This document shows, in pieces, positions 1 to 33,100 of a stretch of 64,000 nt of DNA. The DNA comes from Macrostomum hystrix (Eukaryota; Animalia; Platyhelminthes): contig CATNEN010000039.1 of the NCBI GenBank assembly GCA_950097015.1, positions 15,500,001 through 15,564,000 on the forward strand. Direction: 5' to 3'. The notes below the pieces were generated by a model. The model was given only the letters and a program-made list of their open reading frames with translations. It did no database searches and was not told the origin of the DNA. The translations under genes were made by a program, and so were the position numbers. Position 1 is the stretch's first letter, and every line of letters begins with the position of its first letter.

Positions 1-1630
1 TCCGTCACAGCTTTTTGCCCTGCCATTAGCGTAGTCAGTTCCTGTCCTGTTGAAGCGCACCTGAAAGTTAGGGTGAAGCAGGACTCGGACGCAGTCTCGG
101 ACATGCTGCTGCCAGTTATTGCTGCGCTGCTTCTTCAGGTAGGCAACCTGTAAATGTATTTATTAAGTTTCTTATTCAGGGACTATAAGACAAAAGGACG
201 CTACACTACTAAATAGAATAGGGCGATTTAACACAAGTGAGATGGAAATTCCGCAGCTTCAGTTTAGTTAAAAAAATCACGTCAACGTCTTAACGATGGC
301 GAGTTTTAGTTGTTAGCTCGTATTGATCCTAGCAACAGTGATAAAAAATTTCTATATGAAATATTAGCTTTTCAATTTCAGTGGAAAGTAATTCGACAAA
401 ATATAACTCATAGCACTCATATGCGAATTTTTTTAACATCAGCTTATTCACTGCATTGGATCCGACCAGCTGGCCACGATGGAAAACAGAAAATACTCAC
501 AACAGTCTTCCGAAAATCATCGTCTTTGATTTTTTGCTCGAAGTCTAGGTAATCTTCGAAGCTTTCAATTGGAAGACAGCTGATGACACCAGAGTCCTGG
601 CTACGGTCATCCGGCAAAGAGTTGAGCTTTTCTGACAGTTTGGCCAGCTGGCGAATTATGATTGCATTTTGAAATACAATACCTGAAATATAAGAATGTA
701 CATGCAACTAGAATTAAAAAATTACAGTAAGATTGCATTCCACATGACGTACATTCAATTGAATTTCTATTATTAGTATTCAGTCAACATACCCTGGACT
801 GAAAATAGGTCGACATTTTCTAATGCAAAATTGGCCGCCATTTCAGACACGATTGATTTGACGCTTGTTTGGTATTGACCTCGAACATTTCTTACTAAAC
901 TGCCGTTCGAAGACTGATACGCAGCAGAGCTTGTTAAAGTGCTGTCAACACCATTCGCACTATTTGTGGCAGTTTCCGAATTACGACTTACAGGTGTTGT
1001 AGCCGACGGATTCGCGTCAAAACGGGCGCCACTAGACCGTCTGCTGGGACCAGCACCGGAAGCAGATGAAAAGGGAGGCAGCGGGGGAGGTGGAGGCAGC
1101 TTTGGAGTCAAAGATACAGAAAATGCCAGTTGAGAAGATAAAGTATGATTCGGTCTCTCCGGTGAACGCACGCCCCGGCAATCGTTGCTTGCGTTTACTT
1201 CAGAATCTGTCTCTTCAGCTGATGTAGTATTGCCCGTCGGCATCCGCAGCAGTGACTGAGAAATATTAGAAGAATAAAAATTGTATTATGAGAAAAGGCA
1301 GGAAAAAAGCAGTCATTGACAGCAATTAAAAATCAAGACAATTGTAAACGTACGTGCATACTCGGCAAAGAAATCCGTTTGTCACTAGAAGGTCGCCGCG
1401 AGAATTGTTTTAGAAGTTGCTCGATTGTATAGTTATAGGGCGGCAGTTTAGCGTTAACACAGTGGTTCATAATTGTCTTTAGCAAATCTAGGTCTTTAGA
1501 AACGGCAATGACAATAGCGGAATACATGTCGCCATCATAGGAGACTCTAGTTTTAAGATCTTGGGTAGTTGTGCTATTTTCCGAAATAGAGTGGACAAGC
1601 GTATCAGTCAGTAGAGATTTGTCTTCTTCA
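1..1630 (-). CDS. DUF4806-like CACTA accessory protein, multi-exon, runs off window start; 5' end uncertain
   Basis: Phase-compatible GT-AG exons ~1630-1354, 1255-793, 682-501, 147-<1. Spliced product reads LPIESFEDYLDFEQKIKDDDFRKTV|VAYLKKQRSNNWQQHVRDCVRVLLHPNFQVRFNRTG, resembling DUF4806 proteins of animal EnSpm elements. Confidence 0.6.
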
Positions 1631-1952
1631 GTTATGTAGAATGTTTTGTAGCAAAAAACACAAATTAGATATGATTTTAAATTTGTAAAAGCAAAAAGCA
1701 CATAAATATAGATATAAACATATTAATATGCAAATAAATTTCTAAATACTATAGGCCCTTAAAATGTTGCAATCCTTTATGCAATTGATTATATTAGGCT
1801 TATGGGCTATAACTAGCTAATGATTCATTAAATTTTGTCTCTAAATAATTACAATTATGTATCTAAATTTTATTTACTTATAAAATGGAGTACTTATTGA
1901 CATGGCCACTGTGCAGGCTCTCATTGTCACAGCTGCCGTGTCTCCAGTGTGG

Positions 1953-2317
1953 CCATAGTCAAGAAGGTGGCACAATGTGCACTGACAAATTTTTTGTCTC
2001 TCCCAAAATTGAGTGCCATGCATTGACACAAAACCCTATGTGCGCTTACTTGGAACAAAAGTTTGAAGGACCAAAGAAAAAGTCCCGTGGACCTTTTCTT
2101 TTCTATCTCCTCAAAATATTCACAAATATTCCAAATTTTTACCTTTGCCCTACTTACATTGCCAAGTTTTACCAATTATATTACCAATTTTACACCACAT
2201 TGTGCACCAATATGCGCCAAGACCCTTTGTGTGCACTGCACTTATGCGCTATTGTGTGCAAAAAATGCATCTATGCTCCAGAATTTTCTAACCAAATTTC
2301 CACCTTTCTGACTATGG
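1953..2317. mobile_element. MITE (365 bp), CCATAGTC termini, 8-bp TSD; superfamily unassigned
   Basis: TIR ccatagtcaagaaggtgg / ccacctttctgactatgg; TSD cagtgtgg at 1945-1952 and 2318-2325. Confidence 0.9.
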
Positions 2318-3299
2318 CAGTGTGGGAGCTTTCTATTTTAGGGACACAGCTACTGTGTTTATAAGCTTCAATATTATAGACATGGTGGCTATGTCTTTAA
2401 GATGATGCTACACAATAATAGAGACATGGCTGCCATACCTATAAGCTTTCACATTATAGACACGGCTGCCATGTCTCTAAGTGTGGCGTTTATAAAAAGC
2501 CCATGAAATGGGACTTTATAATATAGAGTATTAATAAACCCGAGCAACATTTTTACGTATGGTTACGTCCATGATACGTATCCAGGAGGAAATTCATTTG
2601 GTTTCACGTCCGTTTTCCCGTTCGTCTCCCCAACGTTCCCATGACGAAATTTTGTTACGTATTGTGAATGTCTTTGCACGACATGCAGGAATCCATGCGT
2701 GCAGTGCAGCGCGCCATCCTAATTCCACGAACAGCCTAATTTTAAGGTGTCGCACAACTAAATCCCGTACCAATTCAATACAAATACACGTACGCCTTTA
2801 AATGCACTTAAAGAACAAATTAAAATAAGGCAAAATATCTGATCATCAACCCCATCCCAAAAAAGCACGCTACTTTTATTTATACGAATAGCCATGCCTA
2901 TTTGCTACCGCTTCCGCCAATACCAATAAATATGAATCTAAAGTAAAAATTCCATTTCAGCGAAGAAGTGTTATAAAATTTAAGGAGCTTTATAAATTGA
3001 ATGTACGCAACAATGTTTATTGATTTAGTGTTTCCAGCTCGCTCGGGAGCTACGCAGCTCCCAAATTCAGATCAGAAGCAATTAATTAATTCATTCATTC
3101 ATTCACACATGCTACAACACTACGAGCTTTATATTTTTCCATAGCAAAATTGGGTAAAATTCAGATTAAACGATTTCAATGAGCAATGAGCAATTTACGA
3201 AAACTAAAAGGGGACATGATCGGAAAAGATAGAATATTCTTGGAGAGCATATGTTCTTGCGGCCACCAGCTACCCGCTACCAGGACGAATGATAATTCC

Positions 3300-3393
3300 A
3301 GGTTTCCACTCCCACATTGGTCTTTTTCCAGTTTTTTCTACTGTTTTGGGGGTTTCCAGGTTTTTCCAGATTTTCCAGGTTGCGGACACCCTG
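3300..3393 (-). mobile_element. Single hAT-like terminus fragment
   Basis: Reverse strand begins CAGGGTGTCCGCAACCTGGAAAA with subterminal CTGGAAA repeats; partner end not found. Confidence 0.45.
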
Positions 3394-3489
3394 TACGGTG
3401 GTAGATATAAATACTTCTTTGGTACAAAAGTCTCACAAGCGACTGATCCCGAGTGTACATATCTCATCTAATCAGTCATTCACTGTTAC

Positions 3490-5655
3490 TTATTGTCCGG
3501 CCTCCTTACTGCCGTCGTCATTACCCTCGTCGCCATCATCGTCCGGCTCCACGCTGCCGCGGTCTTCTTCCTCGTCGCCATCATCGTCCGGCTCCATGCT
3601 GCCGCGGTCTTCTTCCTCGTCGCCATCATAGTCCGACTCCACGCTGCCGCGGTCTTCTTCCTCGTCGCGATCATCGCCCGGCTCCATGCTCCCGCCGTCT
3701 TCCTCATCCATCTTCTCTTCATCGTTGGTATCGTCGCCCCGCTCATCATCTTCTCTCGTCTCGTTGTCACGATCGTCATCTATTGTCTCTCCTAGACGCT
3801 CCGCCCTCTTTGTCATCCGCTTCAATATTCCTCCGATAAATGCAGACGGAGTAGTAGTTCCTAATTGACGCTTAAAATGCTTTCTCTCAGTGATAATCTC
3901 TGCAAATTAATGTTATAATTGTATCAATATTTTTAGTGCATAATATCTTCAAAGTTGCCTCAACACTACAGAAACTCACTTGATAGGCACTCCACAATTG
4001 GTTGGGCAATCTAGCCTTGCCTCGACGGCCCTGAATGTTGAAATGTTTTAGAACGCCTGGCCTTGCTGTGAACTCCAGCATTGAAACTACTGCGTCAGTC
4101 AGCTTCGGTATATCAGACTTAGCAATGCAGTATTGAATCTAAAACAAAAAAATAGTATAATTATATATTTATTACATTTTTCCGATCTTGATCTGGTAAT
4201 ATAAATGGCCTAATTAAGTACATAAAGAAATCGGCGGCAGCGTAATTAGCTGCTTACAATCAACTTACGTATTCGGCACGGACGTCTTCTTTTTCATCTA
4301 GCAACTGTGAGAAAGCCTCGAAAGCTCTGCGCGTTCGGACGGGCAACATGGTTAGAGAATCTGGGATGTCGATTTGCTGTCTTCCACTTGCAACTAGAGT
4401 CTTGAGCTCGAGTATATGCTCAAGTAGGAGGCCTATCCATTCTGTAATATAATAGTCAGTGAAATTGTAAATAATCAAAATGCAATACAAGGTCAGTGGT
4501 GACACAAATGCTGAACGACTTACTTTCAAGATGCTTGCAATGACACGGAGCTGTTGAAGTAGATGCCGCTGGCTCCAGACGAGCAGATAGGGCAGCTAGT
4601 GAATGAGCAGTAGAAGCAGCACCAGCCAGTGGACGAGCTGAAGCAGAGCTAGCTTGCGGACGAGCTGAAGCAGAGCTAGCTTGCGGACGAGCTGAAGCAG
4701 AGCTAGCTTGCGGACGAGCAGAAGCAGAGCTAGCTTGCGGACGAGCTGAAGCAGAGCTAGCTTGCGGACGAGCAGAAGCAGAGCTAGCTTGCGGACGAGC
4801 TGAAGCAGAGCTAGCTTGCGGACGAGCTGAAGCAGAGCTAGCTTGCGGACGAGCAGGAGAAGCAGCACCAGCTTGCGGACGAGCAGGAGAAGCAGCACCA
4901 GCTTGCGGACGAGCAGGAGAAGCAGCACCAGCTTGCGGACGAGCAGGAGAAGCAGCACCAGCTTGCGGACGAGCAGGAGAAGCAGCACCAGCTTGCGGAC
5001 GAGCAGGAGAAGCAGCACCAGCTTGCGGACGAGCAAAAGCAGAGCTAGCTTGCGGACGAGCAGGAGAAGCAGCACCAGCTTGTTGAAAGGCAGAATTAGT
5101 AGCACAGGCTTGCGGGAGGTCAGAAGCACCAACAGTCTGCTCCTTATGTGAGGACGATGCAGCAGCTGATTTAAGTGAGCAACCAGTAGGTGGAGACGGA
5201 CAAACAAAGGTTGGACACTTTTTTGCTTGCTTAGGTGTAGTGCTAGTAGTGTTGGAGTCAATAAAATATTCAACAGATCGTCGCTTTCGCTTAGAACTTG
5301 TGTCTGTGTCCGAAAACGTCCCAGAGTCTTTGGAGCGTCGCAGACGGTAAAGCAGGTACTCTAAGTCGTCTAAATTAAGTATTGGACACATTAGATAGTT
5401 TAAAAAACATAAAATGTAACAAAAATACAATATTTTAAACATTAACATACCGTTTTCCAAGTGGATTTTTAAGACATTAAATGAGGGCCAGTCCTTGCCT
5501 ACTTCGGCACTTTTTTTCACAAGACGTAAGAAAGATGCATTTAGAGCATCATGAAAATTGTTAGGTAGAAAAGCAGTTTGCTTATCATTAGCTAACCAGG
5601 TGAGTGGCAACACAACTGAGCCATCATCAAACTCAGCAAGAGCAAATCGCTTCAT
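3490..5655 (-). CDS. DUF4806-like CACTA accessory protein (5 exons) with A/S/P/R/Q repeat linker and acidic tail
   Basis: Exons 5655-5451, 5369-4524, 4441-4269, 4138-3980 join in phase. N-terminus MKRFALAEFDDGSVVLPLTWL and LPVRTRRAFEAFSQLL...FNIQGRRGK motifs are typical. Last acceptor (~3899/3897) is ambiguous, so the acidic tail to 3490 is less certain. Confidence 0.7.
3520..3700. repeat. 48-bp tandem repeat (~4 copies), probably coding (EPDDDGDEEEDRGSV/M)
   Basis: Repeated ctcgtcgccatcatcgtccggctccacgctgccgcggtcttcttc. Confidence 0.85.
4630..5080. repeat. Coding minisatellite, 27-bp and 30-bp units (ASSASARPQ / AGAASPARPQ)
   Basis: Near-perfect in-frame tandem units within exon 2 of the DUF4806-like gene. 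Confidence 0.95.
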
Positions 5656-20035: not shown

Positions 20036-21584
20036 TTGGACTGCTTTTACAGGAAATGCTCTCTTCCTTGAATTTCGGGCTCCCTACAGCGGATTTAATT
20101 GACTATTAACTTTATTTGGCTCCCATTTTGTGGACTGACCAGGACGCCGTGCACCCCTGAATTTCTACCCCAGCTCTGTGACGCTGATTACCCATTTTTC
20201 ACGGACATTGGTCCCAACAACCACTCTTATTACAAGACTTGGACACAAATAGGACTATGCTGATGGCCTTACTGGGGGGGTTAAGGGCTCGAGGGTCACG
20301 CTTAAATGTTTTTTTGTTTTTTGTATTTTTTTCTGTTTTATTTCGTCTTTGGCTCTTCTGCTTCTTCTCTTGCCCCCAATGGGAGTGGATCTGAGAGTTC
20401 CTTAGCTCGGTCCGACCTCAGACCACTGCCCAGGGGCTCTCCTGATCTTGTGTTTGTTTGCCTCATTCTCTACTCTTGTCCAACCTTTCCTCTCGTCTCT
20501 CCTATCTTGAGAGGATCTCTCGTATCTCCTTTCCATTTTTCCCTTTGTAATAAAATTAATGTCCTAGCTAGAGCATGAGGAATTTTAAGCTAGCGACTAT
20601 TCACTATTCACCGGGGTCGGTGTCCTACCAATCGTTTCAATAGCAGCAGGGAAATCTGGAATTAAATAGCGTTAGAGACTGTGGTAGCGAGCGAAGCGGA
20701 ATAGATAAGCGATGAGACCCGTGTGTCGTCCTCCGGCCCGGTGAAACTCCCAATGAAAAAGAATAACACAGTATGAACGCGAAGACTCGAATAAATTGAT
20801 TAGGAGTGAGTTAATCTGTTGTGACTCGCTAAGATTCCAGAAAATAATAGGAATTGATTTGAATCTCGCTTACTTGATTTAAAAGTTACACTGACAGAAT
20901 AAGGATGTTCACACGGAAATAAATTATAGCGCGCTCACAGTGAGAAGCAAAGTTTGGTCTAACAAATTGGATATAACAATTTTACTTAAACTGGCCTAAT
21001 CCGCGCCCTACTCTTCCCGAGAGGCTCCGGTTGTCTCTGCTTTCAGCGCTGCCTCGACAGATCCTATCGGTTGGCACTCCTTCTGCCTGACGGCGAAGTC
21101 TCCGAAGAGAGCACGTACTGACTTCGACAACAAGCGCCTATCTAGACCACCCTTGTCAGCGGCGCACTCTCAAGACGCGTAGCGCCGAAAGCTACCTAAC
21201 TGAACCCTAGTCGACAATGACTTTCGCCATCTTGCCATATCTGACTTACAAAATCGTGCACTTTTTGCAAAGAAAGTATAAGATCTGACTTGAGTTTTCT
21301 TGACCGATCTGGCAAGATATTACAAGAAAAGTAGTCAGATCTGGCAAGATCGTTTAAGAATACAATAAGATCTGTTAAGATTTTTGCAAGAATTTATAGT
21401 GACGGATCCCGATTTTCATGCACTTTGAATTATTGAAATTATTAGGAAGAACGTTCAAATTAAGAAAGCAAGTCAGTTTTCAAGAGACGATAAGTGCTTA
21501 AAACCTTATTGGTTCTCATACGGATCCTTAATTCGATATAATCCTTAAATCTTAATCCATAATCCTTTAATTCTTGCCTTAGGA

Positions 21585-21875
21585 ATAGGCAATGTGAATA
21601 GGCAATGCGAATGCTACATGAATTGGCAACGCAACGTGAATAGGCAATGCGAATGGGCAGTGTGTATAGGCAACGTGAATAGGCAATGTGAATGCTACAT
21701 TAATTGGCAACGCAACGTGTATAGGCAACGTGAATAGGCGACGTGAATAGGCAACGTGAATGCTACATGAATTGGCAACGCAACGTGAATAGGCAATGCG
21801 AATGGGCAGTGTGTATAGGCAACGTGAATAGGCAATGTGAATGCTACATGAATGGGCAACGCAACGCAACGGGAA
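21585..21875. repeat. ~13-bp minisatellite (aggcaacgtgaat)
   Basis: Degenerate tandem units visible. Confidence 0.85.
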
Positions 21876-21889
21876 TGAGCAATGACAGT

Positions 21890-22390
21890 TTAATTATGTT
21901 CATTTAGTAGCAAAATAGGTGCGACAAAAGTAATTTTCGAGTTCGCTAAAGGGATTAGTACACACTTTCGGCGTAGATATCTGCAGTCGACCTTTAACTG
22001 GTCCTCAGAGATCGGGACATCTTGTCGATCCCGCTCGAGAACGAACAGATCGATTAGCGGCACATCAGTGCACATGCTGAAATGCGTCTGAAAATGTGTC
22101 GCTTTGGGGAGAGGAGCAACTGTAGCGACCGTTTCGGATTCAAACTTTAGAATCGTGCCAAAGCATCTCGCGTTCGAATCGGGCTGCTGATACTCGCAGA
22201 TATAACTGACAGATGAACCTTTGCGCTTATTGCTGATACTGTGAAAAGAGATGCCATTAATCTTCATTGATTCAGGTGTCCGGCGTGATCGGCCTCGGCT
22301 CGCCTTTCTTCCTTGAATAAACCGAAATGTTTGAGCCGCTCGAGGACTTTTGATGAAAAACCAATCAAGCAGCAACATGCTTCTGCTCAT
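21890..22390 (-). pseudogene. Probable C-terminal remnant of a CACTA transposase
   Basis: INGISFHSISNKRKGSSVSYI...FGTILKF...KCVLIP resembles C-termini of animal EnSpm transposases; lies near the element-4 end. Confidence 0.55.
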
Positions 22391-22905
22391 TTTCGTTGAC
22401 CAAAACCGTTGCTCCCTAAGAAAATAAAGAAAAGGAAATAAAGTTATTAAGGAACCTATATACAGATATTAAAGCCAAAATTTCATGCAATGTGAAAATG
22501 AAAATGTTACTAAGTTGCTTAATTTGCTAAAAATGCCTTTACCTAGCTAAGCTATGCCTATTGCTTTGCTATTTGCTATAGCATGTTACACTTTACTTTT
22601 TAAATCAAAAGTTAATAAAGATTACCTAGTCAAGAAAGATGCACTTATGGTTGGGGTTATGGATAGAGTGATAAAAGTATATTGTAATTGAGTTAAACTG
22701 AACATTGCTAGTAATATAGATGCATACAAAATTTTAGGCATATGTATTATATAATCTGAACTATAGCTGCCCAATCATTACACAATTTCCCTTGAATTCA
22801 GCTAAAAATTTTTTTCCTTAAAAATCAAGTAGCAAAAACAACCAGCATAGCATCTAGATACACATAAAAGATGCATAGATTCACTAAAAGATTCACTACC
22901 TTATC

Positions 22906-23186
22906 CATACATGCGCAACACCCGGCCGACCCGGCCGAACCGGCCGGGTGAAACGAGGGCTAAGCAAGGTAAGTCGCAAAAACCAATTGACCAAGCGCAA
23001 AAAAATCAAAGGGGGGACCAAGGGACAAAAAAGGAAGGCGTGAAGAAAAGGAAAAAGGGGAGAGAAAAAGAGAGCAAATGAGAGCAAACTAAGTCGTAAA
23101 TAGAGCAATGAAACGAACTAAGTCGCAAATGAGAGCAAAAACTAAGTCGCACGGCCGGCTAAGATTCGGGAGGTTGCGCATGTATG
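22906..23186. mobile_element. hAT-type MITE (281 bp)
   Basis: 14-bp TIR CATACATGCGCAAC; 8-bp TSD accttatc at 22898-22905 and 23187-23194. Confidence 0.92.
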
Positions 23187-24564
23187 ACCTTATCTCTAGT
23201 GTAAGTGAATTAAGCCAAGTGACAGGCACAAAAATAAGAAGGGTTAAATGACAATGTACATATTTTTAACCCCATTTAATATCAAATATATAAATATGAT
23301 TACCTTATATAAGCTATATAGTTCAATATAGGTTGCTTCTCTAAAATTATATCTGCAACTTTGGGTTTTCTTGACCATTTTTATAGGCAACACACTTACT
23401 AGAGTTTTTATTAGATAAAATGTAGGGGTCAGGCAATATCACTTTTAGAGAGTTGATCAAGATTCAAGATTAGTGCATTAGGCCTATGAGTGTAAAATAG
23501 TAAAAAAGACTGTTGACTGAAATTAACAATCATAATCATCAAACAGTATCTAGTGCTTATTTACTCTAGTCCAGTATATATTATGATTCTACAAAGTTTC
23601 TTCCTGGAACCCATCACTTGCATATAAAAGAGAACTTTTTTGCTAATTTTTTCTAAAGTTGTGAAGAAGTACAACTGTAGACTAAATAAAATTATAAAAT
23701 AAAATCTTGAATCTTAACCTTTTTTGAGATCTCAAAACCAAGATTGAGATTGAAAAAAGTGCCAAGATCACTATGATTGAGATTTAGATATCGTCCAACC
23801 TCTAATAAAATGGTAGTCCTATGACCACTCTGAACTAATAATGGCTTACATGTATATATAGCCAATGGAAACAGCAGTGATTACCAAGGTTGCACTGATC
23901 CATGTCTACATGCATAATGTTGAAAGTTAGTTAACTTTTTTTGCTTAAATAATTAGGCCTAACTAAGGGTAATACTGAATTGATAAATAACTAACGGTAT
24001 TAATAAAATATTGAATAATAATAGGTCTAACACTAAACTAAATATCAGTTGCTATTTATTAGCACTAGTTTCTGAAAAATAGCCGTAGTTGTTGAGATAT
24101 TTAACCTAATTACTAGAATTACTAGAGAAAATTTCGAAAAAAAACAATAATCATTTTATTAGGGTAATGTATCATCAACCCATAGTCAGGAAGGTGGCCT
24201 CTGAGGCGGAAAATTCCGGCGCACACAAAGGGTCTCGGAGCACATCGGCGCACAAGTGCGGCACACACAAAGGGTCTCGGCGCATTGGCTCATAAGCTGC
24301 AGTACACACTATAAATTCCAAGAAGTCGTAATTTGTCGTAAATTGCATATTTGTTATTCTAACGGCATTTTTCAAATATTGAAATTGTTCATAATTTTTT
24401 AAATTGTATGATTGAACATCTTGTATCATTGTCGTAACTCGTAAATATTTTTCGTATTTCCTGTTTCCCATCAACTGTCCGAACTGTGTTACAACTTACA
24501 ATTACTGCTTTCGTTTCGATTCAGTTTTTTTCAATATTACATATAAATCTGCGATCTGTGAATG

Positions 24565-25217
24565 TGATGTAGACCGATTTCAAAACCGAAAAACCGCCAA
24601 TTTTGTTTTAATACACGTAAAATGCAATTATTTGTTTTAAATGCGAAAATCTTTTATATTTTGTTTTAATACACGTAAAATACAATTATTTGTTTTAAAT
24701 GCGGAAATACGTTGTTTTAATAGGGTATAATTATTTGTTTTAAATGATACGTTTTTGGGTATAAATACAGGAGTAAAATTGAGAGGAAAACTAACCTTGT
24801 TCAACGCAGTTGACAACAAAGTTCGTATAACATACTCAGAATCGTGTTCTTTCATTCTTTTAAAACATACGGAGACAAATACCAAGAAAGATTCAAGAGA
24901 AAGAAAGATATAGAAAGTATTGCTGTACACTTGAGATCATTGGTAACGCTCTTTGGAAAGCCTATACTCAGAAATACATCCATGCGATAATTAATCGGCC
25001 AGAATAACTAAATACGCTACCTTAGACCAACTAAAGACGATATTCAAAGATAACTAAATACGCTACCAAGAAATTCTTTTGGATATATAGAATACATTCT
25101 CAGAAATTAATTCTAAGAAACATTAACAGTAAAGATTACAACAACTTTGGGAACAGCAGTGGGATTCGCATTATTGGAAATAAAATTTAGTAATAATATA
25201 GACAGAGGCCTACAACA
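24565..25217 (+). repeat. 5' LTR
   Basis: TGATGTAG...CTACAACA; no difference from 29511-30163 seen by eye. Confidence 0.95.
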
Positions 25218-25221
25218 ACTT

Positions 25222-25239
25222 TGGTGGCAGCGGTGGGAT
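25222..25239 (+). promoter_or_regulatory. Primer binding site, tRNA-Leu
   Basis: TGGTGGCAGCGGTGGGAT, complementary to the 3' 18 nt of metazoan tRNA-Leu (…AUCCCACCGCUGCCACCA), 4 nt after the LTR. Confidence 0.9.
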
Positions 25240-25278
25240 CTCAAGAACAGCGTGAAAGTAATAGAACAGTACTCAGAA

Positions 25279-25557
25279 ATGTCACCTCTAATTCTGATCT
25301 TAATGGTCATGATGAACCAGCAGCCAGGTCTCCCATCACTATTCGGAAGTCAGCAGGAGACAGTAAAGAAGACAGCAGGAAGAGGAAGAAGAGAGCATGA
25401 AACGATCACAAAGGACAATTTCCACATGTTTAACAGATGCTACATGTGCGGAACTCCAGGAACAGCAACAGTGAGGAGAACTGAAGAGGAATTAAGGAAC
25501 ATGAGACCAGGTTACCACATATGCAAAGTAATCCTGAGACGATATGAGAATAAGTAA
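25279..25557 (+). CDS. Small orphan ORF (92 aa) with CxxC...HxC motif
   Basis: First ATG after the PBS; CYMCG…HIC; coding-like composition in an AT-rich context. Confidence 0.4.
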   Translation: MSPLILILMVMMNQQPGLPSLFGSQQETVKKTAGRGRREHETITKDNFHMFNRCYMCGTPGTATVRRTEEELRNMRPGYHICKVILRRYENK

Positions 25558-25953
25558 AGGATTAATTGAGGTCTTAGCGCGATTAATTGTAAATAAACTA
25601 CTTGTACATAGATTGCTTACAAATAAAAATATGCAAAAAAGAATATAAAAATTATAAAAAGATAAATAAATAAATAGAAGTGCTTGACCATACACAGACA
25701 AAGTTACAAACAAATCACATACACACACGCGCATCAATTAATGAAAAGTACAAAGATGAGACGACGTGAATTCGGTGAAAACGAGAAGTCATTGTGAGAA
25801 TTAGAAGTCATTGTGACAACGAGAAGTCATGAGAAATATTTGAGAAGTTGTTGACAAAATTAAGAGTGCAAGAGGTACGCTTAACCTGGCCAGCTTAAAG
25901 TTCTGACCCAGCTACCAAATGCAAAGAAACAGAAAATAGAATCCAAAGACGAA

Positions 25954-28140
25954 TTGAAGGAAGACAGCCCGACAGTGGACAGTCAGCTAGGACTGATTCA
26001 GCCGTTAGAAGTACAGAGAACCTGCGAGACCGACACCGACATTCCCACCAATATGGTCGACGGCCGTCGTGTCACTGTCCCAGGAATCGAAGAAGAGATG
26101 CCAGCAAAACAGTTGACTAGCGGAAGCTCACTGAAGCATCAAAGCTGTCAGACTGACCTGGAAATTCTCAAGGAGCCGAAAGTGCAAGAAGAAGACGATG
26201 ACGATGAAGAAGAATTCGAGGATGCCAGAGATTATTTCGAAGACGAAGAAGTTGAGGAAGAGAGATGTCGGAAACTTCTTACTGACTATCTCGAGGTTCC
26301 ACTAAAGAAGGAGCAGTTGGTTCAAGCCCAGCAAGAAGACTCCTCTGTGAGAACACTGATAGATTGGAAGAAGAGTGCAGTAGAGAAACCGACAGAAGAC
26401 AAAGTGTCAGAGGAATTGAAGAAGATGGTGAAGTACTATGAGCAGATGAAGTTCGAAGACGATTTATTGACAATCCAAGAAGAGGGAGTCAGAAAAGTCG
26501 TGTTACCGAAGAATATCGAGGAAGCTGTATTCAGAGAGTTACATGATAGTCCTTTAGCAGGTCACCTAGGCCGTGACAAAACCACGCAGAGAGTGCGTGA
26601 GCGGTTCTGGAGACCCGGACTGGTAACTGCAGTAGAAAAGTACATTTCGGAATGTATAACTTGCTTAGAGAGCAAAGCGGGACATCGGATCCCAGCACCT
26701 GTGCAGAATTTTCCTATTTGTGAGCCGTTTGAACGTCTTCATTTAGATTTTATTGGCCCTGTGTCCAAGGACAGCCGAAGAGGACATAAGTATGTGTTGA
26801 CAATAGTGGACAGTACTACTAGATTTCCATTCGCGTTTCCAACAAGAAATCAGAAATCAGACACCGTTATTAAAATACTACAAGAGAGAGTGTTCGCAGA
26901 ATACGGACAGTGTAAATGGATACACACTGATAACGGAAAATCATTCACTAGCCGACAGTTTCAATCCTTCTGTGAGCTGTATGGGATTAAGCATACATGC
27001 ACTACACCCTACCATGCTCAGAGTAACGGTCTAGTTGAAAGATTTAACGGTCAAATCAAATCGATTGTGACATGTCTAATCAACAAAGATCACTCAGACT
27101 GGGATCTAATGATTCCAGCCGCGCTTGTAACAGTGCGTACGAGTGTAAATCAAACTACCGGATATTCGCCTCATTATCTTCTATTTGGGCGTGAAGCAAC
27201 TTTGCCCATAGACAATATCATTAAGAGACCACATGAATTCGCTAATTATCCCAGCTATGTGAAAAATCATGCAGAAAGACTGGAAAAAGCTACTAAGATC
27301 GTCAATAAGAAATTGGAAAAGATCCATGAACAAAGGAAAGAAAAAGCCGACTGTGCAAAGAAACCTAAAGAGATTGCCATTGGAGGAATTGTCTTATTAA
27401 ATAATCCACAATTACAGCAGGAAGAAAGCCATAAGTTCCACAGAAAGAAACGAGCAGCCTATCGAGTACTTGCCAAATTATCCGACACAGTCTATCGAGT
27501 GCAAAGAGAAGTTAATGGAGAAAGAGTAGGAGATAAACTTATTGTCCACAGAAATAATATCACACCAGTGCCGAATTCAACAATCTCATTAACAGACACG
27601 AATAAAGTCACACAGCCAAAACATAAGGGAGGTCAAAGCAATAATCACAGCACACAGCCAAAACATAAGGGAGGTCAAGTAACTTCAAAGAAAATTATTC
27701 CGAAAGTAATCCTTATTAACGAAGAAGAAGAATCCGAAGAAGACGAAAGAATAAGGTGGAGAGCAAATGCTGGAGATAGTGAATCTGACATCGAAATTGA
27801 CCAAGAGCCAGAGCAGAGTGAAAGTGAAGAAAGCGAAGATGGAGATGACTCAGAAGAGACAGAGCCTGCGATAGAAGAAAATGTACAGTCCGAAGATGAG
27901 CCTGCAGAGAATGAACAACAAGAAATCGAACAGTCAGAAGGGGAGAGCGAAAACAATGTACATACCGAGAGAGCTCACGGCTACAACCTACGACCAAGGC
28001 ATGAGCAGCCTAGCCAGCCTAGACCCCATGAGTCAGGCAATGCGAGAGGAGGGTTGCGTCACACCCAGCCAGGCTCACAAGGTTTTGTGCCCCGCGAGCG
28101 ATATCGACGATACATACCCCACGGAGAGGGCGAACAATAG
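25954..28140 (+). CDS. Gypsy-type integrase (HHCC + DDE core) with acidic extensions; true start uncertain (frame open from 25885, first ATG at 26053)
   Basis: HDSPLAGHLGRDKT..CITC, LHLDFIGP, TDNGKSF, YHAQSNGLVERFN, TGYSP..LLFGR, YNLRPR. Confidence 0.93.
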   Translation: MKEDSPTVDSQLGLIQPLEVQRTCETDTDIPTNMVDGRRVTVPGIEEEMPAKQLTSGSSLKHQSCQTDLEILKEPKVQEEDDDDEEEFEDARDYFEDEEVEEERCRKLLTDYLEVPLKKEQLVQAQQEDSSVRTLIDWKKSAVEKPTEDKVSEELKKMVKYYEQMKFEDDLLTIQEEGVRKVVLPKNIEEAVFRELHDSPLAGHLGRDKTTQRVRERFWRPGLVTAVEKYISECITCLESKAGHRIPAPVQNFPICEPFERLHLDFIGPVSKDSRRGHKYVLTIVDSTTRFPFAFPTRNQKSDTVIKILQERVFAEYGQCKWIHTDNGKSFTSRQFQSFCELYGIKHTCTTPYHAQSNGLVERFNGQIKSIVTCLINKDHSDWDLMIPAALVTVRTSVNQTTGYSPHYLLFGREATLPIDNIIKRPHEFANYPSYVKNHAERLEKATKIVNKKLEKIHEQRKEKADCAKKPKEIAIGGIVLLNNPQLQQEESHKFHRKKRAAYRVLAKLSDTVYRVQREVNGERVGDKLIVHRNNITPVPNSTISLTDTNKVTQPKHKGGQSNNHSTQPKHKGGQVTSKKIIPKVILINEEEESEEDERIRWRANAGDSESDIEIDQEPEQSESEESEDGDDSEETEPAIEENVQSEDEPAENEQQEIEQSEGESENNVHTERAHGYNLRPRHEQPSQPRPHESGNARGGLRHTQPGSQGFVPRERYRRYIPHGEGEQ

Positions 28141-28537
28141 GCTATTACATAACAGTGGGAGGCCAATTTATTGAGATTGCCATTTAATCCTGTGTAATCT
28201 GATTAATCTGCAAATCAATACTTAAGATAATCTGCAATAAAAACTAAGCCATAAAAGTTATCAAAAAAGTATAAAAACATAACTACTCAGAAAATCATAA
28301 TCTATAAAAAGAGTATAAACATGAAAATATTGGACTAAGAAATAATGTCAGTAACTAAAATCAAAGTTGGTGACTTATTAAATCAAAAAGTAAAGGTGTC
28401 AAAAGTGGCCCTCAGTCGGAGTGGGGGGGGCTGGACACAATGATGCGGTCCAGTTCGGACCCCATATCCTCAGACCACCAGAGTCAGAGATTGGAACTAA
28501 AATATAGCCGTCACCATACTCAGACCTATTCTTAGAT

Positions 28538-29242
28538 ATGGATCAAGACCTAGACAACTTCCTTGAAAGCCTATTGAGTGAGGATCAGCCTAAAGAGAAC
28601 CAAGGATTACCGGCTCCGGAGCGCCAGTCTACTCGGCCCAAACCACCACCGAGCATGCCAGCAAAACGGCCGAGGATTCCATCACCGGTTGGTGTCAAGC
28701 AGACGAAAGTCATTGATCGCCCGCCAGACCAGCCGCCGAAAGTACTACGAGTCAGCATCGGTGGAGCCACAGCTAAACCTTCATCATTGCCTGGAGGAGC
28801 AGCAGCGGCCCCGCCTGTCCGGTCAGCTCGACAATCGGCAGGACCAGCAGGGCAACCGAACCCGACACCCAGGGAGTCGACCCCGGTCAGGACGGACCTG
28901 CGACAGCAGCTGCAGCCAGGTCCCACCAGCAACGAGGATGACGAGCGCGACCAGCTGGTACATGAATTCAAGTGGTATTTACTGCGCGTCGCCAGCCCGA
29001 CATTTGATCAACAGTACCCGCAAAGGTCTGGTGTGTGGCCGAACGTCCGGACCATGAAGGAACGGTTCAATCGAGACCAGGCCGTGGGAATCCTACAGGA
29101 TGCAGCGCAGGGAGTACATAAAGCGCTGCCTTCCATCGAACGGACTGTTTTCCGCCAGACGATTAACGTGGAACTGTGCTGGCTATTCTGTCAGATAGGA
29201 TGGAAATACTATCGTGATCTGCCGGCTCCATGTGAATTTTAA
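28538..29242 (+). CDS. Orphan ORF3 of the LTR element (234 aa; Pro-rich N-half, predicted helical C-half)
   Basis: ATG-to-stop, GC-rich ORF between integrase and PPT; no family recognised. Confidence 0.6.
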   Translation: MDQDLDNFLESLLSEDQPKENQGLPAPERQSTRPKPPPSMPAKRPRIPSPVGVKQTKVIDRPPDQPPKVLRVSIGGATAKPSSLPGGAAAAPPVRSARQSAGPAGQPNPTPRESTPVRTDLRQQLQPGPTSNEDDERDQLVHEFKWYLLRVASPTFDQQYPQRSGVWPNVRTMKERFNRDQAVGILQDAAQGVHKALPSIERTVFRQTINVELCWLFCQIGWKYYRDLPAPCEF

Positions 29243-29498
29243 AAAGGTGAAATTGACTATTATAAGCAGAATTAACAATACCTCTAGTACTATTCTCATT
29301 TATATGTTGTCTTTTTCTAGCAGTCTATCATTTCGCTATCTTTATTACTATGTGTCTAGCTTATTATTTGGATTATGTCATGTTATTGTATTATTATTGC
29401 CAAATGTTGCATATATCTATTTTTACTAAATGCTTGCTACAATATGTACATAGAATTCTTTTTCTCACTTGCTGCGCGCATTCAAAAAATGAATTATT

Positions 29499-29510
29499 AG
29501 GGAGGTCAGT
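29499..29510 (+). promoter_or_regulatory. Polypurine tract region
   Basis: agggaggtcagt immediately before the 3' LTR. Confidence 0.6.
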
Positions 29511-30163
29511 TGATGTAGACCGATTTCAAAACCGAAAAACCGCCAATTTTGTTTTAATACACGTAAAATGCAATTATTTGTTTTAAATGCGAAAATCTTT
29601 TATATTTTGTTTTAATACACGTAAAATACAATTATTTGTTTTAAATGCGGAAATACGTTGTTTTAATAGGGTATAATTATTTGTTTTAAATGATACGTTT
29701 TTGGGTATAAATACAGGAGTAAAATTGAGAGGAAAACTAACCTTGTTCAACGCAGTTGACAACAAAGTTCGTATAACATACTCAGAATCGTGTTCTTTCA
29801 TTCTTTTAAAACATACGGAGACAAATACCAAGAAAGATTCAAGAGAAAGAAAGATATAGAAAGTATTGCTGTACACTTGAGATCATTGGTAACGCTCTTT
29901 GGAAAGCCTATACTCAGAAATACATCCATGCGATAATTAATCGGCCAGAATAACTAAATACGCTACCTTAGACCAACTAAAGACGATATTCAAAGATAAC
30001 TAAATACGCTACCAAGAAATTCTTTTGGATATATAGAATACATTCTCAGAAATTAATTCTAAGAAACATTAACAGTAAAGATTACAACAACTTTGGGAAC
30101 AGCAGTGGGATTCGCATTATTGGAAATAAAATTTAGTAATAATATAGACAGAGGCCTACAACA
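29511..30163 (+). repeat. 3' LTR
   Basis: Direct repeat of 24565-25217 (offset 4946). Confidence 0.95.
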
Positions 30164-33100
30164 AATGCGATAACCTAACTGTATGATGAATGTATTTTAT
30201 TTCGTAACATTAATACATAATATAACCCTTAGGTTAACATAGGGTGCTTTCCTGTGTAGGGTCAGGGCTAAGGAACAGAAACAGCGCATAGACGGCACAC
30301 AGATGGCGCACAGACGGCGCACAGATTGTCCCTCCAAAATTTATTCCGGCGCACACTCTGCCACCTTCCTGACTATGGTCATCAACCAGTGTACTTCAAA
30401 ACTGAACAAAAATTTTGACTCTTTCCTTGGTCTCGTGCAAGACAGAAACAAGCTAGTGTGTTTCATAGAACATCTAATTAGAAAGTTGAAGAAATTATCT
30501 ACAAGCTGAGGCATGATGTTCAATGAAGCATTAGGAGGAAAAAAAGATATTGATGTTTCAGTAGAATTTTTTATTGCAAAAGCATACTTTTTGACAACAA
30601 TTTTTCAGTAGGTACTTTAGACAAAGATTGTATGTGGTTGCTTGCCAATAGCCAATTAAATGACCATAAATGTAGTTATTTATAGAGCATGAAAAATGCT
30701 TTCAAATGACATAATCTATGATACACTCCTTAAAATAAGATTAAACCACTCACTCAAATTGTAAAACCAAACATCAAATTCTCTGTTTGGTTTGAAGATA
30801 CATAAAAATCATTGTTTGGTTTTAGATAAAAAGCAGGAATAACTTTTGTCTATTTGACAAAATAGCAAAAGCAGAAACTTTTTAGAAAGATGTAACTGTT
30901 TTCTATAACTTGGATTTTGATTTATCATCATATCTTAAATAGAAAATCTGTAGCTTAGGTTTGAAGTTAAAAAATAAACATTCTTGTTTGGTTGATGATA
31001 CATTACCCTATATATAATAATGATGGTAAATTATTGAACTGTTCTTAAATTATGACATGCATGTATTTGATTATATTTTTTCTTCTGTTTTAATAATAAT
31101 TGGTAAGTTTTTTATGATTCCCAGAATACATTTTATAATTTGTACTTAACCTAATTGTTGAATACAAAATGTTAGCCCTGATCATTTTTTATGTAGATTG
31201 GTATATGGCAAGAAATATTCACTTATGTCCAGCATATACTCTGCCATGACAATCCAGAGTATGGATGGAATATATATCGTCTTAAGACTAAATTGTTAAG
31301 CAATAGAAAATCAAGGAATCTCAAGTTTTTATTTAAGCTAATATAAAACATACTACCAGCTTATACAGTTAATAATATTGCTTAGTTATAACATGTTTAT
31401 AATTCTTAACATTAGAGTTAGACAGCCTAAAGATCTAGGCCCATAGCCGCCTAGATATCAAACAAGCCTATGCACTATACTACAGTCTAACATGCAATGG
31501 CTCACAGCACTCCAACGTAGGCGCTCTTCTGCTGAATATGTCTCGAATCGGCCATCACTCAGTTTTAAAGTCTGACTAAAGTACTTAGTACTATTATACC
31601 ACAATATGCAGTATGTTGAGTTCAATTTAATCTCCTGGACTCGAGTTAGTGGATTCTGTCTTAATAGCCTTTTTGAGGAGGAAGATTTGGGCGTGGTAGT
31701 GATTGAGCTCTGCATTGGAGCGGTATGTTTGATATGCAACAGAATAAATGCCTACAATATGCGAGATTTAGAAATTAGAAATCCAGGACAGCAGTAAAGT
31801 AAAGAAAGTGTAAAGTAAAGAATATATAATTTATGTGATGTATGTGATAAATAAAAGAAAAAGAATAGCGAGAAAAAGCTGGCAAAAATGTTCAAATGTT
31901 AGGTGTTAAAACAAAAACAGTTAATTATCTATAATCGCGGCCCTTGTACGTTAGACAAATGTGCATATATATTTCGCTTAAATAGTTTCTTATTACTTAT
32001 TTTTTAATTTTAATGGTGTTTGTGGTTTACCAACGAACACTGGAATCTGCCAGTTTTATACAAATTGCACAATATGTTCAGTTCTAGGGAAAGAATATTT
32101 AAAATACCTGTTGAACGGTATCGTTCGAAATCGTTATGCATGTATCGTTATGCATGTGTGCACTTAAATATTCGCTATATACAATGTTAACTTCGGAAAA
32201 TATTAAATGTACAAATTATTTTGCATACTTATCAGGTTGACTTGTCAGATCTGACCATATCTGTGAAAAAACCAAAAAAAGTAAACTGAATGACTATACC
32301 AAAAATTTTATTGTTTCTCACTTCCAAAATGTTGTAAATCATTTATGAACTGACTTTTCAAGACAATAGTTGTTGGTGAAAACATTATTTTTTTATTTAC
32401 TATAGCTGTGACATCTTACTGTCTCTTGCCGGATCTGATCATATCTGTCAAGAAACCCAAAGGAAGCAGACTTAATGACAATTAGAAAAAATGGAATTTT
32501 TTTACTACAAGAATAACTGCAACACAGTTAAATTTGTTTTTTTGGTAGCCGTGACAGTTAGCGCATATTTTATTTTCTTACCTATTCCTAACAGATCTTA
32601 GCAGTTCTGCCAAGATTTTATAGGATAAGTCAGATCTTACAAGGCAGAATGTAAGATTGTCAACTAGGGAACAAGCGGAGCGTGGTCGGGCGGGGAGAGA
32701 CAAAAAAAGTGGACTGGTTTGCACGTGCTTCTCACAGTGTGAGGCGAATTGCGGAGAACGATAAAAGTCACTGCAAAAGCACGCTTCCTTTTATAGAGTC
32801 ATTTTAACCCCAAATTAGGTCGATCGGCGAGGTGGATGCCTGGCTGTAGCTTGAGCCAAGGCGAAAAATCACAGTAGACTTGCGACCGCCGTTCTGAGCC
32901 CCGGGGTCGCTTCTTGCCGAGGGTAGACAGGTAGTGAGGCCCGGTCGCTCGCTGATTGGCCGGGACTGTAGCTCAGGGGTAGCGCTCGCGGGGTGGTGGG
33001 CGTCCGTTCTCCCGGTTGGTCCGGCCCGGCTTGGCGTGGGTGACTTTTAGCAAAAAAACACGTGTCTAAAAATAAGTATTGAATAATAACACGGGGAGAT

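Follow-up and report, generated by a model that had tools for sequence, protein, structure and literature searches.

Anatomy of the element

The window, a 64,000-nucleotide stretch of the genome of the flatworm Macrostomum hystrix (C39:15500001-15564000, in an assembly of 220 Mb and 42 contigs), contains at positions 24565 to 30163 a long terminal repeat (LTR) retrotransposon of the Ty3/Gypsy type, which is itself nested in a DNA transposon. Between its LTRs the element carries a small open reading frame (ORF), an integrase ORF, and a third frame, here called ORF3. It is a young recombinant, non-autonomous and present as a single copy: most of its length is shared with a complete Gypsy element elsewhere in the genome, and the region from gag to RNase H is replaced by a cassette that belongs to a lineage of small-ORF elements. 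Its features and those of its carrier are listed below, with positions in the window.

24561-24564, + strand: 5' target site duplication (TSD) AATG, read from the sequence
24565-25217, + strand: 5' LTR, 653 bp, TG...CA, 100% identical to the 3' LTR
25222-25239, + strand: primer binding site (PBS), 18 nt, perfectly complementary to the 3' end of a tRNA, with the spacer ACTT before it
25246-25931, + strand: cassette standing in for gag, protease (PR), reverse transcriptase (RT), and RNase H (RH), common to non-autonomous small-ORF elements and not to the sibling described below
25279-25557, + strand: small ORF, 92 aa (12 open copies, dN/dS, alignment)
25929-25943, + strand: 3' crossover interval, A-rich, about 11-15 bp, where cassette and sibling homology overlap
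25954-28140, + strand: integrase (IN) ORF, 728 aa (Pfam, sibling identity, tblastn)
about 26506-26679, about 26722-27015, and 27505-28140, + strand: HHCC finger, DDE core, and C-terminal domain with acidic tail, all inside the integrase ORF
28538-29242, + strand: ORF3, 234 aa, an accessory gene shared by autonomous and non-autonomous members of this Gypsy clade
29499-29505, + strand: candidate polypurine tract (PPT) AGGGAGG, 5 nt before the 3' LTR, read from the sequence
29511-30163, + strand: 3' LTR, 653 bp, 100% identical to the 5' LTR
30164-30167, + strand: 3' TSD AATG, read from the sequence
21205-32669, no strand: carrier, a non-coding DNA transposon with terminal inverted repeats (TIRs) hosting the nested LTR element, with the ends CCCTAGTCGACAAT... 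and ...ATTGTCAACTAGGG

The termini are those expected of a Ty3/Gypsy element, with TG...CA LTRs, a short TSD, and a tRNA-complementary PBS beside the 5' LTR. An earlier description made from the letters of the window, referred to here as the sequence-only reading, had reported identical 653-bp LTRs, a 4-bp TSD, and a perfect tRNA PBS, and each of these was borne out. The LTRs agree over all 653 bp with AATG on both sides, and the PBS TGGTGGCAGCGGTGGGAT, following ACTT, is fully complementary over 18 nt to the 3' end of a tRNA together with CCA. The genomic form of that tRNA end, the 20-mer TTCGAATCCCACCGCTGCCA, occurs seven times in the genome and not once in the control; the primer is presumably tRNA-Leu(AAG). 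Match tables are the source for these tRNA genes, for the carrier's empty-site copies, and for the autonomous partners of the G2 and G3 elements described below. The proposed PPT is present as the purine run AGGGAGG 5 nt before the 3' LTR and makes a weak but plausible candidate.

The ORFs of 92, more than 700 (728), and 234 aa were recovered by the ORF finder where the sequence-only reading had placed them, and its claim that the interior lacks Gag, PR, RT, and RNase H was upheld by Pfam and by tblastn of the sibling's proteins. Pfam assigned only Integrase_H2C2, rve, and Integrase_p58_C to the long ORF, and neither the small ORF nor ORF3 gave a Pfam match. Tblastn with the sibling's gag and pol recovered pol residues 875-1610 alone, which indicates that nothing of gag, PR, RT, or RNase H is left in the element. 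A chromodomain, the mark of chromoviruses, was not found by Pfam at the integrase C terminus, which consists of Integrase_p58_C and an acidic tail instead. With intact LTR, PBS, and PPT termini, no gag, PR, or RT of its own, and an autonomous partner with matching LTRs on contig C38, the element belongs among the non-autonomous ones. It is very young and has to obtain Gag, PR, and RT in trans, and to that extent the sequence-only reading is supported.

A full-length sibling and a single recombinant copy

The autonomous sibling, located at C38:15042542-15050888, is an 8.35-kb element bounded by an LTR pair that is 98.6-98.9% identical to the LTRs in the window. It encodes a 334-aa gag with a CCHC knuckle and a 1610-aa pol, followed by the same ORF3. 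Its pol domains, as placed by Pfam, follow the Gypsy order (gag-asp_proteas 136-224, RVT_1 480-640, RT_RNaseH 740-840, H2C2 1067-1124, and rve 1139-1236), so that the Ty3/Gypsy succession PR-RT-RNase H-IN is complete in the sibling, whereas the window element keeps the integrase part only. The two elements are 98-99% identical over element positions 1-693 and 1368-5599. Between these blocks, positions 694-1367 (window 25258-25931, 674 bp) have no counterpart in the sibling; about 690 bp containing the 92-aa ORF stand where the sibling has 3.4 kb from gag to RNase H.

The integrase ORF corresponds to sibling pol residues 883-1610, from the RH-IN linker onward, with 99.5% nucleotide identity. 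Just 11 of 2184 nt differ, which suggests that the intactness of the integrase reflects youth rather than selection; the differences (8 non-synonymous and 3 synonymous, from the sole comparison) are too few for a selection test. The stop-free frame of more than 700 aa noted previously is indeed present, with 728 aa and Pfam integrase domains, and requires one correction, as it does not start with ATG. The ORF finder had taken a TTG, the first in-frame ATG lies at 26053, and 16 other ATGs precede it. No plausible start codon context was found for this frame, and the element contains no protease to release an integrase. Readthrough from the small ORF was also considered and rejected, since the frame, although common to both, is closed by stop codons in between. 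The most likely reading is that the integrase is an unexpressed passenger. Its acidic N-terminal extension, noted previously, is present and lacks an RNase H remnant, as had been stated; it is the native linker of the sibling pol between RNase H (ending at about residue 840) and the HHCC finger (starting at 1067).

A third member of the family, on contig C24 (loci L034 and L039, C24:2394487-2404515), is interrupted by an insertion and is itself mosaic. Its protease region is split by an insert of about 1.5 kb, in which a 391-aa ORF resembles a DNA transposase. The integrase of this copy is 98.6% identical to that of the window and its ORF3 only 52%, so that it too is a recombinant mosaic. A further length difference was seen in public contigs from three runs, in which position 26003 is joined to 26095, skipping 91 nt of the acidic RH-IN linker. 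The shorter side of this join measures just 26 nt, and the skipped segment (26004-26094) probably marks a length variant of another family copy.

The junction between cassette and integrase occurs once in the 220-Mb assembly. Two further LTR matches at 100% identity, on C1 and C3, are solo LTRs with the same flanks and the same AATG as the insertion in the window. Because they lie in the same DNA-transposon unit, the three represent one insertion event, and the shared flanks rule out independent insertions on C1 and C3. At C1:25.65 Mb and C3:15.26 Mb the carrier is a 6.5-kb unit with a solo LTR in place of the full element. The three carrier loci (C1:25650000-25657000, C3:15260000-15267000, and window 21205-32669) are at least 99.9% identical, have different flanks, and are bordered by 2-bp duplications (TA, TA, and, in the window, AA); the carrier's ORFs gave no Pfam match. 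Two of the three carrier copies have thus already been reduced to solo LTRs, though the LTRs carry no substitutions. Counting copies of the 5.6-kb structure, as the sequence-only reading had proposed, therefore returned one junction and no distinct TSDs. Its suggestion of a stable integrase-only family is contradicted by the single-copy junction, by the common origin of the other identical LTRs, and by the lack of a usable start for the integrase.

Public read contigs bridge the cassette-integrase boundary, which indicates that the junction is not a mis-join and contradicts the assembly collapse that had been named as a possible refutation. An X2 contig covering 25876-26121 spans the junction with 0 differences, and an X1 contig covering 25218-25961 spans it as well, ending as expected of a unitig at k=31. 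From 26428 onward, the read contigs lack the letters private to the window, and the sibling and the C24 copy agree at all those positions. Majority rule in contig building explains this lack, and its interpretation as the sign of a second hybrid copy was discarded. In their cassette part, the contigs show an AAAGGAT PBS and two single-nucleotide polymorphisms (SNPs; 25410 and 25431) not found in the window. The 5' part of the cassette reaches 6-10 times the summed depth of the integrase in X2 and X3, where contig depth does not equal copy number. These data hint at a family of near-identical cassette donors in other samples.

The small-ORF cassette and its backbones

The 674-bp segment without a counterpart in the sibling matches small-ORF elements only; its best match in the genome is C14:172663-173389 (locus L042) at 85% identity, followed by at least 10 further loci at 67-75%. 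At all these loci an LTR and PBS precede the cassette, and only some 200 final pol codons and then ORF3 follow it, set off by a spacer totalling about 0.6-0.8 kb. The loci are non-autonomous elements with the cassette in place of gag through integrase, and the window copy departs from the others only by also keeping the integrase. The foreign sequence rules out a clean internal deletion. The earlier statement that the element is not a one-off deletion holds in that a foreign cassette replaces the missing genes; yet the copy is single, and the family envisaged with that statement was not found.

The cassette elements are mobile, as copies 99% identical to each other occupy different flanks, and two stand in tandem on C1. 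In that tandem (L046/L047, C1:27409050-27416393), the elements are arranged head to tail with a period of 3998 bp, and the end of one ORF3 runs into the next LTR. At L042, an additional, decayed combination of LTR end, ACTT, and PBS (GAGGCCTGTAACAACTTTGGTGGCATTGT) lies upstream of the real one, at about 1400-1480 of the locus (C14:172560-172640).

The start codon of the 92-aa ORF, the first ATG downstream of the LTR, lies only a few nucleotides from the position of the partner's gag start. Besides 12 open copies, 2 fragments of this ORF occur in the genome. Between lineages, synonymous divergence is saturated (dS 0.8 to more than 1.6), dN amounts to 0.04-0.23, and dN/dS to 0.10-0.43. The small ORF is a real gene under purifying selection. 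What had been taken for an orphan is a conserved gene and the most informative part of the element. The predicted protein has a hydrophobic N terminus, a basic GRGRR stretch, and a C-x2-C...H-x-C pattern beginning CYxCG. Invariant residues in the alignment include N13, Q14, Q15, P16, G34, R35, G36, H49, C54, C57, H80, and C82. The family, 92-104 aa in length, follows a pattern of about 95 aa (NQQP...GRG...ETITKDNFHMFNRCYxCGTPG...RPGYHVC), into which the window ORF fits. Two loci were also seen: L066 (C1:13084995-13085243), a much more divergent open homologue with 49% identity and the zinc pattern CFFCAKPG...GHKC, and L065 (C5:1901078-1901212), a broken fragment.

A profile search of 1.84 billion representative proteins returned one relative (P0001), an 87-aa protein from a 962-bp Logan contig. 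A sequence-homologue search with the small ORF yielded no candidates, Pfam matched neither the single sequence nor any of the 8 alignment members, and the ESM Atlas gave scores of at most 0.80, to unrelated zinc ribbons. A sequence search of the PDB gave nothing significant, with a retroviral nucleocapsid, p11, at E=1.9 as a lead only. Comparison with the sibling gag by hhalign gave a probability of 1.8%, reflecting the shared CYxCG, and the small ORF therefore does not qualify the element as a TR-GAG, the class of terminal-repeat elements taken up below. The AlphaFold2 model is poor (pLDDT 48). Because of the GRGRR stretch, the CYxCG-type pattern, and the position where gag normally sits, a working guess would be that the protein is a reduced nucleocapsid-like RNA binder that eases cassette RNA into the particles of a partner.

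More generally, the cassette occurs in company with more than one autonomous backbone. In the G2 elements (for example, C1:24243029), about 140 nt up to the gag start are 94% identical to autonomous elements on C29, C25, C41, and C39, identity to these partners resumes at 94-97% from pol residue 1399 onward, and 1.08 kb between the matching flanks is absent from them. In the G3 elements (on C15 and C12), the 49-nt leader is 100% identical to an autonomous element at C38:25.04 Mb and to two C1 sites. The same partners match at 99-100% over a stretch of 855 bp that reaches from the pol tail into ORF3, and the cassette is absent from them. Since the cassettes are synonymously saturated while their flanks are 94-100% identical to the partners, it follows that the flanks are renewed from the current partner and the cassette is inherited. 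The cassette lineage consists of non-autonomous Gypsy elements (small ORF, pol C-tail, and ORF3) on three autonomous partner subfamilies, termed A, A2, and A3.

The G3 elements also bear on the place of the integrase. They keep about 130-180 nt of the linker that precedes the HHCC finger, which in autonomous relatives lies 1.2 kb upstream of the tail, and have lost the integrase core; the retained fragment indicates that an ancestor had the architecture of the window element and then lost the core. The sequence-only reading had also proposed that the element might be the integrase-supplying half of a bipartite retrotransposon. Partners with the same LTR and PBS that encode gag, PR, and RT but lack an integrase were not found: the partners identified, on C38 and C24, both carry one, and because the sibling owns an integrase there is no integrase-less partner to be supplied. 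Together with the loss of the integrase core in G3, this speaks against a bipartite arrangement.

ORF3 has 80 matches in the genome, which group into about 60 loci in the match table, with pN of 0.3-0.4 against pS of 0.7-0.9. The pol tail and ORF3 both have dN/dS below 1, a constraint that may reflect selection in the autonomous partners only. The AlphaFold2 model of ORF3 consists of a disordered, proline-rich center and a confident C-terminal domain in the form of a four-helix bundle. Neither the sequence-homologue search nor the Atlas gave a match for ORF3, and the PDB and BFVD libraries yielded no matching fold. ORF3 could not be recognized as an errantivirus-like env gene by Pfam or by fold, no dedicated predictor of signal peptides or transmembrane segments having been run. 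At C38:33129260-33148459, ORF3 and gag matches repeat with an exact period of 6162 bp, four and three times, respectively; the related Gypsy units there form a tandem array and presumably share LTRs.

Origin of the recombinant and comparison with known systems

The two breakpoints are consistent with a single switch of template. On the 5' side, the element is of sibling type through the LTR and of cassette type from about 25246, with the change located at the PBS and leader. On the 3' side, sibling-type homology begins at 25932 and cassette-type homology extends to 25942. In the sibling and in the cassette relative L042, only 12 nt match the tRNA (TGGTGGCAGCGG, then AAAGGAT), and the read contigs likewise show 12 nt followed by AAAGGAT. 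Given a perfect match over 18 nt in the window, as opposed to 12 nt in the relatives, the PBS here seems to be a recent copy of the primer tRNA. That a PBS can revert to the sequence of its primer tRNA is general retrovirology.

Based on these data, the element is probably a very recent, single, non-autonomous Ty3/Gypsy recombinant that would have arisen by an RT template switch between co-packaged autonomous and small-ORF RNAs. Two RNAs would have shared a particle, one of family A (gag-PR-RT-RH-IN and ORF3) and one from the dependent small-ORF lineage. Minus-strand synthesis would have begun at the 3' end of the family A RNA and proceeded through U3, ORF3, and the integrase as far as the RH-IN linker. 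There, at about 11-15 nt of A-rich microhomology, the polymerase would have switched to the cassette RNA and continued to the PBS of the latter. A second switch need not be invoked, as the parents change at the PBS on the 5' side, and plus-strand transfer would have fixed the tRNA-copied PBS with its perfect 18 nt. The product would have inserted with a 4-bp duplication into the TIR DNA transposon, which would have spread later, with two of its three copies collapsing to solo LTRs. Recombination between co-packaged RNAs is an established part of retroviral replication (PMC3187697).

Several points weigh against this account. The assembly lacks the exact cassette donor, its nearest copy being 85% identical, and a copy at about 99% is hinted at by read contigs only, whose depths are not copy numbers. 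These contigs cannot reveal further hybrid copies in other individuals. The leucine identity of the primer tRNA is presumptive. The small protein resembles a gag knuckle in CYxCG only, and its production and RNA binding are inferred. Finally, recombination at the DNA level after insertion would give the same LTRs and the same duplication.

This last scenario, in which a complete family A element inserted here and its gag-to-RNase H region was replaced later by ectopic gene conversion or microhomology-mediated repair, would preserve the identical LTRs and the duplication equally well, and mosaicism is common in the family, as in the C24 copy with its 98.6% identical integrase and 52% identical ORF3. 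However, a 3' homology of just 11-15 bp or so, which is typical of RT template switching, would serve gene conversion poorly, the parents change on the 5' side at the PBS, the natural strand-transfer point, and no donor lies nearby, which together make a DNA-level replacement unlikely. It is only slightly less unlikely that the hybrid founded, or belongs to, a small replicating family with integrase and small ORF that has retrotransposed more than once, the integrase acting in trans or in cis. Contigs of several runs show the junction with the AAAGGAT PBS and the SNPs at 25410 and 25431 and could represent a progenitor, the window copy could be a daughter that regained a tRNA-perfect PBS, and G3 implies an earlier ancestor with cassette and pre-integrase linker. 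Against such a family, the assembly holds one copy, the integrase differs from the sibling's by 8 non-synonymous and 3 synonymous changes and has neither start context nor protease, and G3 lost the core; the contig variants can also stem from the cassette donor or from graph simplification, in which majority rule drops private letters. A false assembly join between two repeat families would be conceivable in a repeat-rich region with its 3' junction where two such families meet. It is very improbable, as the X2 contig (0 differences) and the X1 contig cross the junction and the LTRs, duplication, and PBS are coherent.

The template-switch origin also allows a broader and much more tentative proposal. 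The cassette, about 0.7 kb in length, may possibly be an old selfish "satellite" module, in which a minimal zinc-binding, nucleocapsid-like protein would replace Gag as the sole cis-acting protein and which would persist by joining itself repeatedly, by template switches within shared particles, to LTRs and 3' genes of the autonomous subfamily then active; the window element would then be an intermediate caught during a change of backbone. The part of interest is the small-ORF cassette, a constrained protein that is kept while the remaining body is swapped with three partners, and not the integrase. If the small protein does package or bind RNA, it would offer a compact natural example of the minimal needs for being copied by foreign machinery. 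The analysis further illustrates that, when the LTRs of a copy are identical, the intactness of a gene within it is no evidence of selection, and that extra identical LTRs can be one insertion spread by another transposon.

Dependent LTR elements are usually seen as non-coding or gag-only, the latter exemplified by TR-GAGs, terminal-repeat retrotransposons that keep only gag. Like these, the window element is non-autonomous and has its first, main ORF at the gag position. It differs in that the small ORF is 92-104 aa long, lacks detectable gag homology as well as a capsid domain, and has a degenerate C2HC motif at best. A limited literature search found no description of a dependent Gypsy lineage with its own constrained, non-gag mini-protein that moves between backbones.

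Other close counterparts are known from plants and retroviruses. Sugar beet families (PMC13570524) are reported to include POL remnants with integrase but without GAG, chimeras attributed to template switching, and solo LTRs. Their LARD-like or "defective" members likewise keep LTR, PBS, and PPT, lack gag and RT, and need an autonomous partner with similar LTRs. In the window, by contrast, an intact integrase with 99.5% identity to that of the partner is kept rather than a decayed remnant, a cassette encoding a selected protein replaces the missing genes, and the host is a flatworm, not a plant. Retroviral copy-choice recombinants (PMC3187697 for the recombination) are alike in their short-homology breakpoints, the change of parent at the PBS, and a PBS that matches the tRNA exactly, whereas the mechanism proposed here is deduced from sequence. 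In the cases of Athila in Arabidopsis (PMC2410132) and of Cereba and Quinta in einkorn (PMC11302176), autonomous and non-autonomous LTR elements are reported to form partnerships with recombination; the dependent lineages share LTRs and 3' regions with their partners, as they do here, and recombination keeps the match. The flatworm lineage stands apart in that one ancient protein-coding cassette is found on three backbones, with flanks 94-100% identical to those of its partners.

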